A stretch of 64,000 nucleotides of DNA from Tubulanus polymorphus (lineage: Eukaryota > Animalia > Nemertea): assembly GCF_964204645.1 (NCBI RefSeq), contig NC_134030.1, forward strand, positions 21,164,210 through 21,228,209. The letters run 5' to 3'. A program made the translations under genes and the position numbers. How positions within the stretch are numbered: position 1 is the stretch's first letter; the number at the start of each line of letters is the position of its first letter. The notes under the pieces are model-generated. The model searched no databases. It had not been told where the DNA came from and saw nothing but the letters and a program-made list of their open reading frames with translations. Below are positions 47,562-61,542 of this stretch, piece after piece.

Positions 47562-48310
<749 letters not shown>

Positions 48311-52274: not shown

Positions 52275-53540
52275 TGAATCCAGTTCCACAGTAGATGTGG
52301 GGGTTTAATTTGACTCTGAACCCAGTTCCACAGTTGTGTGGATTTAATTTGAGTCTGGACCCAGTTCCACAGTTGTGTGGGTTTAATTTGACTCTGAATT
52401 CAGTTCCACAGTTGTGTGGGTTTAATTTGACTCTGAATTCAGTTCCACAGTTGTATGGGTTTAATTTGACTCTGGACTCAGTTCCACAGTTGTGTGGGTT
52501 TAATTTGACTCTGAATTCAGTTCCACAGTTGTGTGGGTTTAATTTGACTCTGGACCCAGTTCCACAGTAGATGTGGGGGTTTAATTTGACTCTGAACCCA
52601 ATTCCGCAGTTGCATGGGTTTAATTTGACTCTGAATTCAGTTCCACAGTTGTGTGGGTTTAATTTGACTCTGGATCCAGTTCCACAGTTGCGTGGGTTTA
52701 ATTTGACTCTGAATTCAGTTCCACAGTTGTATGGGTTTAATTTTACTCTGAACCTAGTTCAGGTTCCATTCAGTATAGTTTTACTCCAAATTTGGGTCAA
52801 CCATATTTGCCTCTGTGAAATGAACTCAGTTTAAACTGTCTGTTCACTGCTCTCTTATTGTCGGGTTCAATGCCTGTTGAAATCACTCATTTTGTTATTC
52901 TCATTATTATTATTATATTAAACCCTTGATTAGATATTTTACCGTTTGAAATTTTTCACATCTCAGTTTCGCCGAACCTGAAAACCTCACAGAAAAAATA
53001 GGAAATACATAAATAATCTTTCAGTTGCAATAATATGATTAATTTGACTGCAGACCTTTTTACCCAGTTCCTCCGCTATTATGTGGCTTTTATTTGAATC
53101 TGGACTCAGTTCCACAGTTTTATGGGTATAATTTTAAACTGAACCCTGTTGTACAGTAGTGTGGGTTTAATTTGAATCTGAACCCAGTTCTACAGTTGTG
53201 GGTTTAATTTGAATATGAACCCAGTTCCACAGTTGTGTGGGTTTAATTTGAATATGAACCCAGTTCCACAGTTGTGTGGGCTTAATTTGAATCTGAATCA
53301 AGTTCTACAGTTATGTGGGCTTAATTTGAATCTGAATCAAGTTCCACAGTTGTGTGGGCTTAATTTGAATCTGAATCAAGTTCTACAGTTATGTGGGCTT
53401 AATTTGAATCTGAATCAAGTTCTACAGTTGTGTTGGCTTAATTTGAATCTGAACCCAGTTCTACAGTTGTGTGGGTTTAATTTGAAACTGAATCCAATTG
53501 TGCAGTTGTGTGGGTTTGTTTCGACTCTGAACCCATAGTT
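52275..53540 (+). repeat. Two 39-bp satellite arrays (52275-52765 and 53060-53540)
   Basis: Same unit as 21960-22660. Confidence 0.88.
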
Positions 53541-57340: not shown

Positions 57341-57622
57341 TTAAGCCAATTTTGCGACTTCGCATAAGTATATGCAAAGCCTGAGGTTGAGATTCCGTTA
57401 TAACGAGGTGCGATGAAAGCCTCAATCATCATTCACGTTTTTCATTATTGACCGCGTATTTTCAGTTTCAGACGAGACGCAAGCAGCTTTTTAGAGTATG
57501 TTCGATTTTCATTTTGTGTTTCAGCCGGCGCGTCGCCACCAGAGGTCGCCGCTTGCCACTAGGCCTCTTGTACTTCTATCTTCCTCACATTCATGACCTT
57601 TGACCTTCCTTTATTCCTACAG

Positions 57623-57748
57623 TCCCCTCCTAAGGGTGCGACCATCCCATACCGTCCAAAACCCCCAATGCCGCCGGTCATCTTCGCAGGGGGCCAAGCA
57701 TACGCCGTTCAAAGCCCGTTCGCGACAGTCCCCCATCAAGCGACTGAG
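57623..57748 (+). CDS. PCBP3: PCBP coding exon 7 (SPPKGATIPYRPKPPMPPVIFAGGQAYAVQSPFATVPHQATE)
   Basis: cctacag| ... GAG|gtgagt, 126 nt. SPPKGATIPYRPKP...VIFAGGQAY is the conserved PCBP linker. Confidence 0.96.
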
Positions 57749-57866
57749 GTGAGTGTGAATTTTTTAATCGGTTCTGAAATTAGAATTCGTTGTTTTTTTT
57801 TTTTCGTCACAAAATCCATCGCCGCCGACACTATCCCGAAGTGAATTTCAGTTTTCATCTATACGT

Positions 57867-58154
57867 CCGCGATCACACGATCGTTTTTCACCTAGACTGC
57901 CGCCAAATGGGTCCATGCCTGTTCGACAATAGCCTCATTAGAAACATCGGACCCGGGCCCGTGCAAAATTAAAGCACGGGTCATCTTATCGTGTGAATGC
58001 TAAATGCTTCCAGAAGTGGTTCACCTCACTTGCTACAGGATCATTTTGATAGCATATCAGTACTGAGTGAGTGATTTACCTGTAAATTAAGTACAGGCCA
58101 AATAGACTCGGGTCTGGTTTGGCCCCGGGCCGAATCGTATCCGTGTGATCGCGG
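57867..58154. mobile_element. ~290-bp MITE with CCGCGATCACACG TIRs (related remnant at ~4945-5220)
   Basis: CCGCGATCACACGAT...ATCCGTGTGATCGCGG, with internal GGCCCGGGCC motifs shared with 4945-5220. Confidence 0.65.
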
Positions 58155-58677
58155 TTTATGTCATAGTGGTCAAACTTCGTGTGTAACTTGCTAGGCCACC
58201 AGTCTTAAGATAAGCGCGGCCTAAGCTACTTAAGTCATGACATCGCAATTGGGGCCAGGTCTTAAGATCTAAGCTGAGATTTGAATCTAATTAGTCTCCG
58301 GTCGGGATTTAAACTTGCAGAGCTGATTGTGGTCTCATAAGGCAGTTTTAAGATGACTTATTGGGACTTGACTTCATACTTAACGTGGTCCTAATTTGGA
58401 AACCCATGACCTCTAAGTTATGTCACGCTTATTTCACATTGAACATCATACTACACCTTTTGTGACGAGTCCACCGGAAGAATATTTGTCGTAATTAACA
58501 AATTCTCTGTTAATTGATGTCTTAATTACTAACAGAATGATTCAATGTGCATGCACTGGTAACGAGACGATCCTCAATGGGGGAATTATCAAAAGGGCAT
58601 CGGTTTGTGGTTTTCGATATCCACGACCCAGGGGCACCATAGTTGTCTTATAGATCACCCATAATTTCGACTATTAA

Positions 58678-58898
58678 CCCTTCCAGTGCGGTGTATGAAT
58701 TGGTGTTTGACTTGGCTGATACACCGCATCGTGGTGTATTGATTAGTTGTTTTCTGTAAAAAAATGAAATATTAGTAACTAATGATACACTGCACCGTGG
58801 TGTATAGACACACTTAAGTGGTGCGCCAGTTATTCAACACACTGGAGAATTTTTATCTGCTGCAATTTTGGGTATTTATCAGTCAGCACTGAAAGGGG
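58678..58898. mobile_element. Diverged piggyBac-like MITE family C copy (further fragments ~43793-43860 and ~63060-63290)
   Basis: TTAACCCTTCCAGTGC...CAGCACTGAAAGGGGTAA. Confidence 0.72.
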
Positions 58899-59066
58899 TA
58901 AGGTCTATCAAACCACACAGCTCTCTTACTGGGTCACTACGGAACTTGGTCAACCAGATTTTAAAAGCATGACACAAAACGTGAATTAGATAAACTTGGT
59001 TGTTGAGGATTTTCGCAAATGTTTAATTCATATTCAAGACAGTTTCACACCACTTTTTCACGATAA

Positions 59067-59189
59067 GGGTCAGTTGCTTGGTAGTTATTTCTAAGATAAC
59101 CACCGATAACTAATGATAACTAATTTTCAGATGGCGCTGTTAACATGTCAGTATAGTTATTGGACAAAAAACTTTTCAGCAACTGACCC
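59067..59189. mobile_element. ~123-bp Harbinger-like MITE
   Basis: TIRs GGGTCAGTTGCT...AGCAACTGACCC. Confidence 0.55.
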
Positions 59190-59660
59190 TGGAACTGTTG
59201 TTATATCAGGATTCAGGATTGATGCATTTTCCAGTTCAATGTAGTGCAAATCCTGGGGCTAGGTTTAATTTTGTGACCCTGTGATTTCCGTTAATCAATA
59301 TGAACCCGGCTTTTGATTTTTGAAATGAACGAATATTCATGTTTTACCTCAATGTTATCATGTATATAAGCTAATGTATGTCTACGGTAGTCTGAAATAT
59401 CTTAGAGTTAGCGGGAATTCGAACCTGATGGCATAGTGACACTCTGCCACGTTCCTCCCTTGGAGGGATTCAAACATGGTGGCATCATCACGATTGATGA
59501 AACACGATATCCGTGTTGAAGTGATGTAGAGAGAATCCCACAATGATAACGACAAAAACAGTCCCAAAATATAACTGAAGCTAGTGTAGTTTATTCAACG
59601 TTTTGACTATATCCTAATAGTCATCTTCAGGAATACTGTATTCCTTAAGCTAGTGTAGTT

Positions 59661-59704
59661 TATTCAACGTTTCGACTATATCCTAATAGTCATCTTCAGG
59701 AATT
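59661..59704 (-). ncRNA. Minimal type-I hammerhead ribozyme motif (antisense copy)
   Basis: The minus strand reads ATTC-CTGAAGA-T-GACTAT-taggat-ATAGTC-GAAACGTT-GAAT with an intact core. Confidence 0.68.
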
Positions 59705-59771
59705 TTGCTGAAGATGACTATTAGGATATAGTCGAAACATTGAATAAACTACACTAGCTCAAGGAATACAG

Positions 59772-59815
59772 TATTCCTGAAGATGACTATTAGGATATAG
59801 TCGAAACGTTGAATA
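59772..59815 (+). ncRNA. Minimal type-I hammerhead ribozyme motif
   Basis: Stem I TATTC/GAATA; core CTGAAGA at 59777; stem II GACTAT-taggat-ATAGTC; GAAA; palindromic ACGT stem III; cleavage triplet GUU (cut after 59810). Confidence 0.75.
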
Positions 59816-60140
59816 AACTACTAGCTTCAGTTACATTTTCGGACTGGTTTTTCCTTATCATTGTGGCATTCTCTCTAGATGACATCACGAGACTCTGCCA
59901 CGTTCCTCCCGCGCAGGGATTCGAACCTGATGACATCGCGAGACTCTGCCACTTTCAGAGCTTTGAACATGACGGCATCAGGAGACTGCTCCATTAAGAA
60001 AGAATGGATCCACTGTTTACTCTAGGGTATAGATACTAGTATAGACATACACACTCTCTCCAGTCTATTCTATATAATCTCAATGTTGTCGTTCATATTT
60101 TTAAATGTTTAGTTGAGCCCTGCTTGTTTGTACTATATAG

Positions 60141-60218
60141 GAACCTAATGCATACACTGCTATACCGTCGCCACCTATTGATGCCGGTGCTTCTACTGCC
60201 GCTATTTATGGTTACCAG
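60141..60218 (+). CDS. Candidate PCBP cassette exon (EPNAYTAIPSPPIDAGASTAAIYGYQ)
   Basis: atatag|GAA...CAG|gttagt, 78 nt, open, phase 0-0, compatible with both neighbours. No recognisable homology. Confidence 0.55.
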
Positions 60219-60313: not shown

Positions 60314-60916
60314 GGGGTAGAATTTTACCGGTCTCAACTTTACCGCAGTAAGAGACAGAGTCTACTGTATTTCACAAACTCTTACTCAGTATTTGACTCC
60401 AACTCGGGGTAGAATTTTACCGGTCTCAACTTTACCGCAGTAAGGGACAGAGTCTACTGTATTTCACAAACTCTTATTCAGTATTTGACTCCAACTCGGG
60501 GTAGAATTTTACCGGTCTCAACTTTACCGCAGTAAGAGACAGAGTCTACTGTATTTCACTAACTCTTACTCGGTATTTGACACCAACTCGGGGTAGAATT
60601 TTACCAGTCTCAACTTTACCGCAGTAAGAGACAGATTCTACTGTATTTCACAAACTCTTACTCAGTATTTGACACCAACTCGAGGTAGAAATTTACCGGT
60701 CTCAACTTTACCGCAGTAAGAGACGGAGTCTACTGTATTTCACAAACTCTTACTCAGTATTTGACACCAACTCGGGGTAGAATTTTACCGGTCTCAGCTT
60801 TACCGCAGTAAGAGACAGAGTCTACTGTATTTCACAAACTCTTACTCAGTATTTGACACCAACTCGGGGCAGAATTTTACCGGTCTTAACTTTACCGCAG
60901 TAAGAGACAGAGTCTA
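60314..60916 (+). repeat. 92-bp satellite, ~6.5 units
   Basis: GGGGTAGAATTTTACCGG at 60314, 60406, 60498, ... Confidence 0.93.
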
Positions 60917-61176
60917 TGTTGCATGATTTATTTTCTTCAAAATGTTATTTGCATCTCATCCAAATAATTGTTTCATTCCCTTGTATGTTAATCCATTTAT
61001 TTCAAATAACTGAATTGGAAATTTTGATGACGCTATTTGCATGAATTTCACTAGAAAAAGTTCCTTCTCAATTACTTTAACTCTACAGTCAAAATCAGTT
61101 CATTTTCAATTACTTTAGTCAAAATCAGTTCATTTTCAATTACACTTATCTGAAAGAATGTTTTACTATTTTGTAG

Positions 61177-61261
61177 CAAGTGGCAAAACTACAGCAGTTA
61201 GCTATGAACCATGGCAGTCTACCATATCTTCCAACGGGCCAGGCCATTCTTCCAGGGGCAT
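61177..61261 (+). CDS. PCBP3: PCBP linker exon (QVAKLQQLAMNHGSLPYLPTGQAILPGA + 1 nt)
   Basis: ttttgtag|CAA...GCAT|gtaagt, 85 nt, phase 0-1. Homologous to vertebrate QLTKLHQLAMQQ. Confidence 0.88.
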
Positions 61262-61542
61262 GTAAGTATATGTAGGGACTGACTGCCCGAATTATATATA
61301 TATATAAACATACACGTGAAAATTGACCACCGTTATGATTTTGATGATGATTGACGTTATTGAATTGAATTGCTTTGGTTCGGTATTTCGAGCAATTTTT
61401 CACCGCTCGACGCTTTTTCGCCGGGAGGCGTACGATCTTAAATTTCGATATAATCCTCAGCTTCCTGAACCCAGTTCCACAGTTGTGGAGAAAAGAGTTA
61501 AATTTGAGTTGTAAGATTATCTTATTCGGGCTTTATAGTCTG

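Follow-up and report, generated by a model that had tools for sequence, protein, structure and literature searches.

The window, the whole 64,000-nt stretch of Tubulanus polymorphus DNA analysed here, corresponds to C6:21164210-21228209 in a 268-Mb, 77-contig assembly, and all positions without a contig name count from its first letter. It contains a plus-strand PCBP-like gene, one intron of which holds a foldback with four hammerhead ribozyme (HHR) motifs, a pair on each strand. From comparison of sequences, we consider it very probable that positions 59490-59877 are a head-to-head double insertion of the 3' end (the terminal repeat, pLTR) of a Penelope-like element (PLE), lacking any open reading frame (ORF) and placed in a 51-bp satellite within this intron.

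The exon at 47622-47759 of the plus strand matches the KH2 region of PCBP2 (PDB 2jzx, E 7e-18) and Pfam KH_1. Further downstream, a 1,531-nt contig of run X4 joins 57621-57746, 60139-60216 and 61175-61263; after a shift for the AG ambiguity at the borders, these segments become exons 57623-57748, 60141-60218 and 61177-61265, with AG/GT borders and one open frame. The insert therefore lies within intron 57749-60140, which is spliced in the X4 contig. The original prediction, made from the letters of the window, had placed the sense pair of ribozymes in a PCBP intron upstream of a candidate exon at 60141, and this holds: the pair lies 263 nt upstream, and the exon is used in the contig. The features around the insert are as follows.

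57623-57748, plus strand: upstream exon of the PCBP-like gene, from the spliced X4 contig, with splice sites and frame checked.
59414-59489, plus strand: left flank, units of the dispersed 51-bp satellite (family D1), the insertion target.
59490-59526, minus strand: 37-nt PLE "tail" extension, ending ...ATCGT in sense and aligning with the last 37 nt of the autonomous unit (tail ...CAACACGGATATTGTGTTCTACCTATCGT).
59527-59703, minus strand: left arm, PLE pLTR end and two 69-bp HHR units, antisense to the host gene.
59592-59635, minus strand: outer minus-strand HHR copy, reading GTCAAAAC, which is G12>A (C>T at a CpG on the plus strand); missed by the exact pattern.
59661-59704, minus strand: inner minus-strand HHR copy with an intact core, a stem III of ACGU and a stem I of 4 bp.
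59700-59707, no strand: foldback centre GAATTTTG, where the 5' ends of the arms are joined head-to-head; one of the 89 genomic centres with 0-30 nt between CUGA boxes (C6:21223895-21223930).
59703-59746, plus strand: inner sense HHR copy, core intact, 5' strand of stem I lost, stem III ACAU (G>A at a CpG).
59705-59877, plus strand: right arm, two 69-bp HHR units and pLTR end without the tail extension, ending CTCTCTA; over 108 nt it is 88% identical to the tail of the autonomous PLE.
59772-59815, plus strand: outer sense HHR copy, complete, with UAUUC/GAAUA, GAAACGUU and U17; predicted scissile bond after 59810.
59878-59990, plus strand: right flank, made of the 51-bp satellite as on the left and oriented alike.
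60141-60218, plus strand: downstream 78-nt exon of the PCBP-like gene, included in the RNA contig.

The inner parts of the two arms (59586-59702 and 59705-59821; 117 nt) are complementary at 97%, and the complementarity extends outward through 59554-59585 / 59820-59851 (91%) and then 59517-59556 / 59848-59887 (85%). RNA of 59500-59910 is predicted to fold at -266.6 kcal/mol into a single hairpin closed by an 8-nt loop (shuffled mean -82.4, z = -34.6). A foldback with arms of about 180 bp and an 8-nt loop had been proposed for 59521-59888; its arms and loop stand, whereas its bounds do not. When both arms are aligned in sense to the PLE tail, the true insert is 59490-59877 (388 bp), with the 3' ends pointing outward and the 5' ends meeting at the centre. 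The left arm covers the complete PLE tail (...CATCACTTCAACACGGATATCGTGTTTCATCAATCGT) and ends at 59490, while the right arm stops at ...GGCATTCTCTCTA (59877) without the final 37 nt of that tail, so that the extension at 59490-59526 has no counterpart on the right. Positions 59878-59888 are flanking satellite, outside the insert. Each arm contains two 69-bp direct repeats with 94-96% identity, in line with the proposed two motif copies per arm at a distance of 69 bp. A PLE ORF was not found within the 388 bp; judged by its content, the insert is a non-autonomous, dead-on-arrival PLE copy, and among the alternatives offered earlier a small non-autonomous ribozyme retroelement comes closest to it.

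The spacer of the 69-bp unit, CT(C/T)AAGGAATAC-A-GTATTCCTGAAG (59762-59782, 59625-59650 and in every unit), is a small palindrome, preceded by a tail segment ending in TAGCTTCAG and nearly identical to some foldback centres, e.g. C2:15879401 (CTTCAGGAATACAGTATTCCTGAAG). The tandem 69-bp unit may have been born from a foldback junction via CTTCAG microhomology. In the predicted fold, this spacer palindrome competes with ribozyme stem I.

The exact HHR pattern CTGAAGA-T-GACTAT-TAGGAT-ATAGTC-GAAAC occurs at 59708(+), 59777(+) and 59699(-), with 0 occurrences in 100 shuffles. The core (C3 U4 G5 A6 N7 G8 A9 plus G12 A13 A14, H17) is exact with U17 in three of the four copies, and an extra unpaired U stands between A9 and position 10.1 in all of them. 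The four copies are in the state described by the original prediction. On the plus strand, the copy at 59772-59815 is intact with a perfect stem I, and the 59708 copy, which reads GAAACATT and carries GAAACAUU, has the 5' strand of stem I replaced by the foldback loop. On the minus strand, the inner copy is intact and the outer one is hit at G12 and is predicted to be catalytically dead. Stem III is a palindromic ACGU in three copies; the ACAU of the 59708 copy is non-palindromic.

The foldback belongs to a large family in this genome. Using the 368-bp foldback as query, 259 scored matches were obtained from 1,402 candidates, including long tandem arrays of the 69-bp unit, some with 20 or more units (e.g. 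locus L025). The exact HHR with GAAACGTT is present in at least 1,157 genomic copies (600 + 557; reversed control 0). Full-length copies of the element are 2,858 bp long and stand in same-strand tandem at locus L029, where the autonomous PLE encodes an ORF of 802 aa with RVT_1 (E 6e-10) and GIY-YIG (E 9e-6) domains and carries a single HHR starting 136 nt before the 3' end of the element. The check suggested for the locus, a genome-wide look for further copies and a linked Penelope ORF with reverse transcriptase (RT) and GIY-YIG domains, thus came out positive. Copies of the ORF at 98-100% identity are found by the dozens across the genome, and the PLE family is therefore young. By domain content and sequence, the family is a canonical endonuclease-positive (EN+) PLE. 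The closest named proteins are PLE-type RTs of decapod crustaceans (38-39% identity), and metagenome contigs reach 53% protein identity.

Two further blocks are conserved in three PLE families of this genome (L029, L032 and L033; proteins 59-68% identical): TGTGGGATT(T)CT, located where the pLTR body ends, and ACACGGATAT(T)GTGT, a near-palindrome within the tail extension. Both blocks are candidates for RT recognition or initiation sites.

As a feature of the PLE family, the hammerhead is, from its pattern of compensatory changes, genuine. The stems are GACUAU/AUAGUC with UAUUC/GAAUA in family A, GGCUAA/UUAGCC with CGC/GCG in family B and GGCUGUU/AACAGCC with CCAC/GUGG in family C, while CUGAnGA-U ... 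GAAA-CGUU is invariant in all three. Four metagenomic PLE relatives carry the HHR between tandem ORFs and add further covariation, with stem III palindromes of ACGU, AGCU or AGCGCU. In an alignment of 8 HHRs (A1), 87.5% of cells are paired, compared with 30-40% after sliding of the partner columns; MAFFT misaligned one or two divergent HHRs, and the partly misaligned L070 row can only lower the score. Double-sided changes are found in 10 of the 11 stem pairs, G10.1-C11.1 (columns 17:35) is G-C in 8 of 8 sequences, and the observed covariation score was reached by none of 500 shuffles. All 8 have either U or G as the unpaired nucleotide between A9 and 10.1. Covariation of stems I and II among copies, another check put forward with the original prediction, was accordingly found across the three families and the four metagenomic relatives.

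One metagenome contig (L065; HHR at 2738 and 5554; 51% protein identity) has the core variant UUGACAA, i.e. U3/A8 for C3/G8. A compensated U3/A8 change of the core was reported in Schistosoma by Cervera and De la Pena 2014 (PMC4209133).

The head-to-head layout recurs throughout the genome. Neighbouring copies on opposite strands, counted over the first 100 listed HHR positions, stand head-to-head (minus-then-plus) in about 18 pairs and in the reverse order (plus-then-minus) in 2. By pattern, 89 foldback centres have 0-30 nt between the CUGA boxes and 23 have 31-61 nt, with all controls at 0, which brings the head-to-head foldbacks of this family to at least 112; a further 16 centres at 62-92 nt (control 0) are mostly the same loci re-counted one unit outward. 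Under random truncation in a 69-bp array, the 31-61 class would be expected to be about 3x larger than the 0-30 class, and the reverse is observed. The tail block is one-sided in 9 of 13 independent foldbacks and two-sided in none (0 of 13). The arms of one foldback often differ in unit number (e.g. 1 vs 7, 3 vs 2). We also examined 20 loci drawn from the HHR list without regard to structure: in 9 of 9 clear head-to-head pairs, one arm reaches element position 2858 (the tail) and the other ends at 2819-2826.

Full-length or near-full-length PLE ORFs are likewise arranged in head-to-head pairs, at C5:7311500-7321499 (L037), C4:13619500-13627500 (L035) and C12:8927725-8936589. On C4, the ORF matches abut directly (13621393-13623048 minus, 13623042-13625399 plus).

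The layout is known from PLEs. An inverted, 5'-truncated copy adjoining the element, with a 30-40-bp tail at one end only, is a PLE signature (PMC3846280, PMC8557442), and pairs of minimal HHRs (min-HHRs) 100-700 bp apart on opposite strands were noted in PLEs (PMC4209133). In vitro, purified PLE protein cuts and extends both target strands and starts reverse transcription internally, the proposed source of the tail (PMC11167929).

The 5' ends of the arms are not scattered evenly. In the 20-locus sample, 9 of roughly 22 HHR-containing arms begin at element positions 2712-2717, and the rest are spread over more than 700 nt. The cluster falls on CATTATTC, with CUGA following 7 nt downstream and TATATATA lying 31 nt upstream. 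Against differing surroundings, three PLE families (proteins 59-68% identical) have kept a TATA-like box and a YCA placed precisely 8 nt ahead of CUGA; rotifer PLEs, too, have been described with a TATA box and an initiator (Inr) in the pLTR (PMC3846280). We infer that transcription starts at the CATTATTC site. None of the sampled arms begins at the HHR cleavage position (about position 2757), and we rejected HHR-cleaved RNA as the insertion template on this ground. HHR cleavage was dispensable for PLE insertion in vitro in 2024 (PMC11167929), with which the lack of sampled ends at the cleavage site fits.

Taken together, the data suggest the following course. Short pLTR RNAs would start at the TATA/Inr-type promoter about 7 nt upstream of the HHR and run to the tail; such RNAs would then be reverse-transcribed from both cleaved target strands (two-sided target-primed reverse transcription), and two full-length cDNAs joined at their ends would form the centre of the palindrome.

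Several points weigh against this reading. Two-sided priming and self-priming are inseparable from sequence alone. A clean target-site duplication is not definable at the window locus, where GGTGGCATC on the left faces GATGACATC on the right in diverged satellite units and the candidate 9-mer differs at 2 positions. The inferred start site is based on motif spacing and copy ends, not on RNA 5' ends. The assignment of the ribozyme rests on a hand-made descriptor and covariation: when the covariance-model search proposed for the locus was run permissively against Rfam, with 2.5 kb and with 141 nt as input, no hammerhead family matched even at E <= 10, as is to be expected of models built on a closed stem III and a motif lacking the stem III loop. 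This outcome weakens formal membership in Rfam and leaves the descriptor-based assignment as it was. Finally, the RNA evidence consists of contigs from four runs, none of which is on record as RNA, and these contigs are silent on RNA ends, strand, editing and small RNAs. The group I intron, snoRNA and miRNA-hairpin matches returned by the permissive Rfam search are sub-threshold noise.

The best surviving alternative keeps the same element and changes the origin of the inversion: a single cDNA may have snapped back at the 5' end of its template and primed itself, giving the foldback from one molecule. We regard this as possible, though clearly the less likely course. Self-priming from palindromes at inverted junctions was argued for PLEs by Arkhipova et al. 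2013 (PMC3846280), and short palindromes and fillers do occur at centres in this genome, e.g. GGAATAATTCC and GGAATACAGTATTCC. However, the arms often differ in unit number and also in length, a typical pair consisting of one long and one short arm, and the tail is on exactly one arm; the PLE protein, moreover, can extend both strands in vitro.

Very unlikely is a reading in which the insert acts as a functional cis-regulator of its PCBP-like host gene, with the sense pair cutting the intron or the hairpin controlling inclusion of exon 60141-60218. The sense orientation, the position shortly upstream of a symmetric 78-nt exon and the presence of one complete HHR motif speak for it. In order to judge the first of these routes, we derived a pairing scheme for the window dimer from the double-hammerhead topology of Forster et al. 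1988 (as drawn in PMC4209133, Fig. 1A), combining the core of one copy with a shared stem III and a stem I between copies. In this scheme, cutting after 59810 would depend on the 5' strand of stem I from the 59708 copy, and that strand is lost; the site cutting after 59741 keeps its stem I (59742-59746 with 59772-59776), and the 4-bp stem III common to both sites contains an A·C mismatch. For the right arm, the double-HHR fold is predicted at -0.1 kcal/mol against a minimum free energy (MFE) of -20.2, and for an intact two-unit RNA at -12.3 against -25.1, i.e. about 20 kcal/mol above the MFE for the window sense pair and 12.8 kcal/mol for the intact pair. By this modelling, both sense-strand active sites are impaired in the dimer, and the window pair cannot form a proper double hammerhead. 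Even intact dimers of metazoan PLE min-HHRs cleave poorly (PMC4209133).

Compared with any ribozyme fold, the hairpin gains about 250 kcal/mol in stability, and with the antisense arm made first the sense ribozymes should be locked in a dsRNA hairpin of about 180 bp in the pre-mRNA. The earlier suggestion that a dimeric hammerhead cuts the intron after 59810 is thus not borne out, and its counterpart, locking in a long double-stranded RNA (dsRNA) hairpin, agrees with the predicted fold. The RNA contig contains exon 60141-60218 and lacks the intron. The genome has more than 100 equivalent insertions. The self-silencing layout suggested earlier finds no support, and neither does a designed regulator of PCBP: the layout recurs at no fewer than 112 loci and is the insertion architecture published for PLEs. 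Disabling CpG-to-TpG/CpA changes have hit two of the four motifs, one at G12 and the other in stem III, and lead away from the sequence found in more than 1,100 copies; such CpG transitions in both disabled motifs are what neutral decay predicts.

Under the PLE-insertion reading, the most likely outcome at the RNA level would be none, or processing by dsRNA pathways, rather than self-cleavage; according to these predictions the ribozyme motifs of the window locus are passengers, and the insert is probably of little matter to the host gene, a decaying transposon scar in a spliced-out intron.

An A>G difference that the contigs show at 59647 was rejected as a trace of editing. The G is the equivalent base of the right arm (GCTCAAGG) and is also present in a run that is likely DNA, and it therefore comes most simply from other repeat copies.

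The weakest alternative, a DNA-transposon foldback or miniature inverted-repeat transposable element (MITE) or a microRNA-like hairpin gene that resembles a PLE by chance, can draw on the long perfect hairpin and on sub-threshold Rfam matches to plant and animal miRNA hairpins (MIR2863 at 72.7 bits vs a gathering score of 94, MIR5649), but it is highly improbable, since the arms align to the tail of an element with RT and GIY-YIG domains, the asymmetric termini left by the one-sided 37-nt tail are a feature of PLEs and not of terminal inverted repeats, the scores of MIR2863, MIR5649, MIR7994 and mir-4662 (45-73 bits) stay below thresholds of 94-100, and both strands match equally, as they would for any long hairpin.

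The PLE double insertion stands in a target of a familiar type, as PLEs are reported to favour simple repeats (PMC8557442). The 51-bp satellite has 217 genome matches, mostly in tandem arrays away from PLE tails; we tried the 51-bp repeat as a part of the element and rejected it, as it is an independent satellite with its own arrays. These arrays cluster on C8, on C12 and at 19-22 Mb of C6. The satellite has a tRNA T-arm-like core, GGTTCGAATCC, on the minus strand, and when the flanking repeat was compared with the element, GATGATGCCACC weakly resembled the PLE 5' start.

Two other repeats lie in the same gene region. A 92-bp tandem repeat occupies 60314-60916 (6.6 copies, 95% identity) in the next intron of the PCBP-like gene; its very high summed contig depth indicates that it belongs to another abundant repeat family. 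Upstream, a minisatellite at 52295-53538 shows long open frames of a repeated peptide-like unit (GFNLTLN.VPQLC...), which is probably non-coding.

In summary, structure and ribozyme motif are both real and fit a kind described before, the inverted pLTR pair of a PLE without an ORF, and the 5'-end hotspot beside the hammerhead is only a modestly new observation. PLE integration is still poorly understood, and this family offers a clean natural data set with hundreds of young copies, which displays one-sided tails, head-to-head junctions, a sharp preferred 5' end at the conserved TATA/Inr-like site beside the HHR and no sampled ends at the cleavage site. One speculative reading, to which we give a low probability, is that the HHR, with which a short pLTR RNA defined by its promoter would begin, may serve mainly to pair two such RNAs via stem III and not to cleave, with a dimeric RT-EN protein copying one RNA per target strand. 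If true, such a pairing role would explain the frequent head-to-head PLE insertions and the centres lying exactly at the 5' edge of the HHR, and transcribed intronic foldbacks would additionally feed dsRNA against the PLE family.

Among known systems, the PLE min-HHRs of PMC4209133 are the nearest for the motif. They share the type-I order, the core CUGANGA...GAAA, the unpaired nucleotide between A9 and 10.1, the conserved G10.1-C11.1, a helix II of 6-7 bp, a helix I of 4-5 bp, the loopless palindromic stem III (ACGU) that implies dimers, and the position within the PLE terminal repeat; none of the features that Cervera and De la Pena give for PLE min-HHRs is missing here. The view that these are minimal PLE-type hammerheads that should need a partner copy is supported by the element with RT and GIY-YIG domains, the three PLE families and the covariation of the stems. 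In contrast to the described cases, the motif here sits within a 69-bp unit that is tandemly repeated in the arm, two copies are mutated, and the motif is known from sequence.

For the insertion as a whole, the closest parallel is found in EN+ PLE insertions (PMC3846280; Craig et al. 2021, PMC8557442), with head-to-head inverted copies, a one-sided tail (37 nt here), a pLTR with a TATA and Inr-like motif, and a simple repeat or satellite as target. The window locus differs from them in that both arms are pLTR only, giving an ORF-less hairpin of 388 bp, and its family in the gathering of arm 5' ends at a single site immediately before the HHR. Inverted Penelope copies yield small interfering RNAs in transformed Drosophila melanogaster (PMC3681739); by analogy, the long PLE inverted repeats described here could form dsRNA if transcribed. 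Metazoan non-LTR retrozymes (Cervera & de la Pena 2020, PMC7229834), which a 2026 preprint derives from PLE pLTRs (10.64898/2026.07.22.740005), share the tandem type-I HHR repeats, the non-autonomous nature and the relation to PLE pLTRs. Their units measure about 170-400 nt and give abundant circular RNAs (PMC7229834), whereas the unit in the window measures 69 nt, is present twice per inverted arm and is known from DNA.

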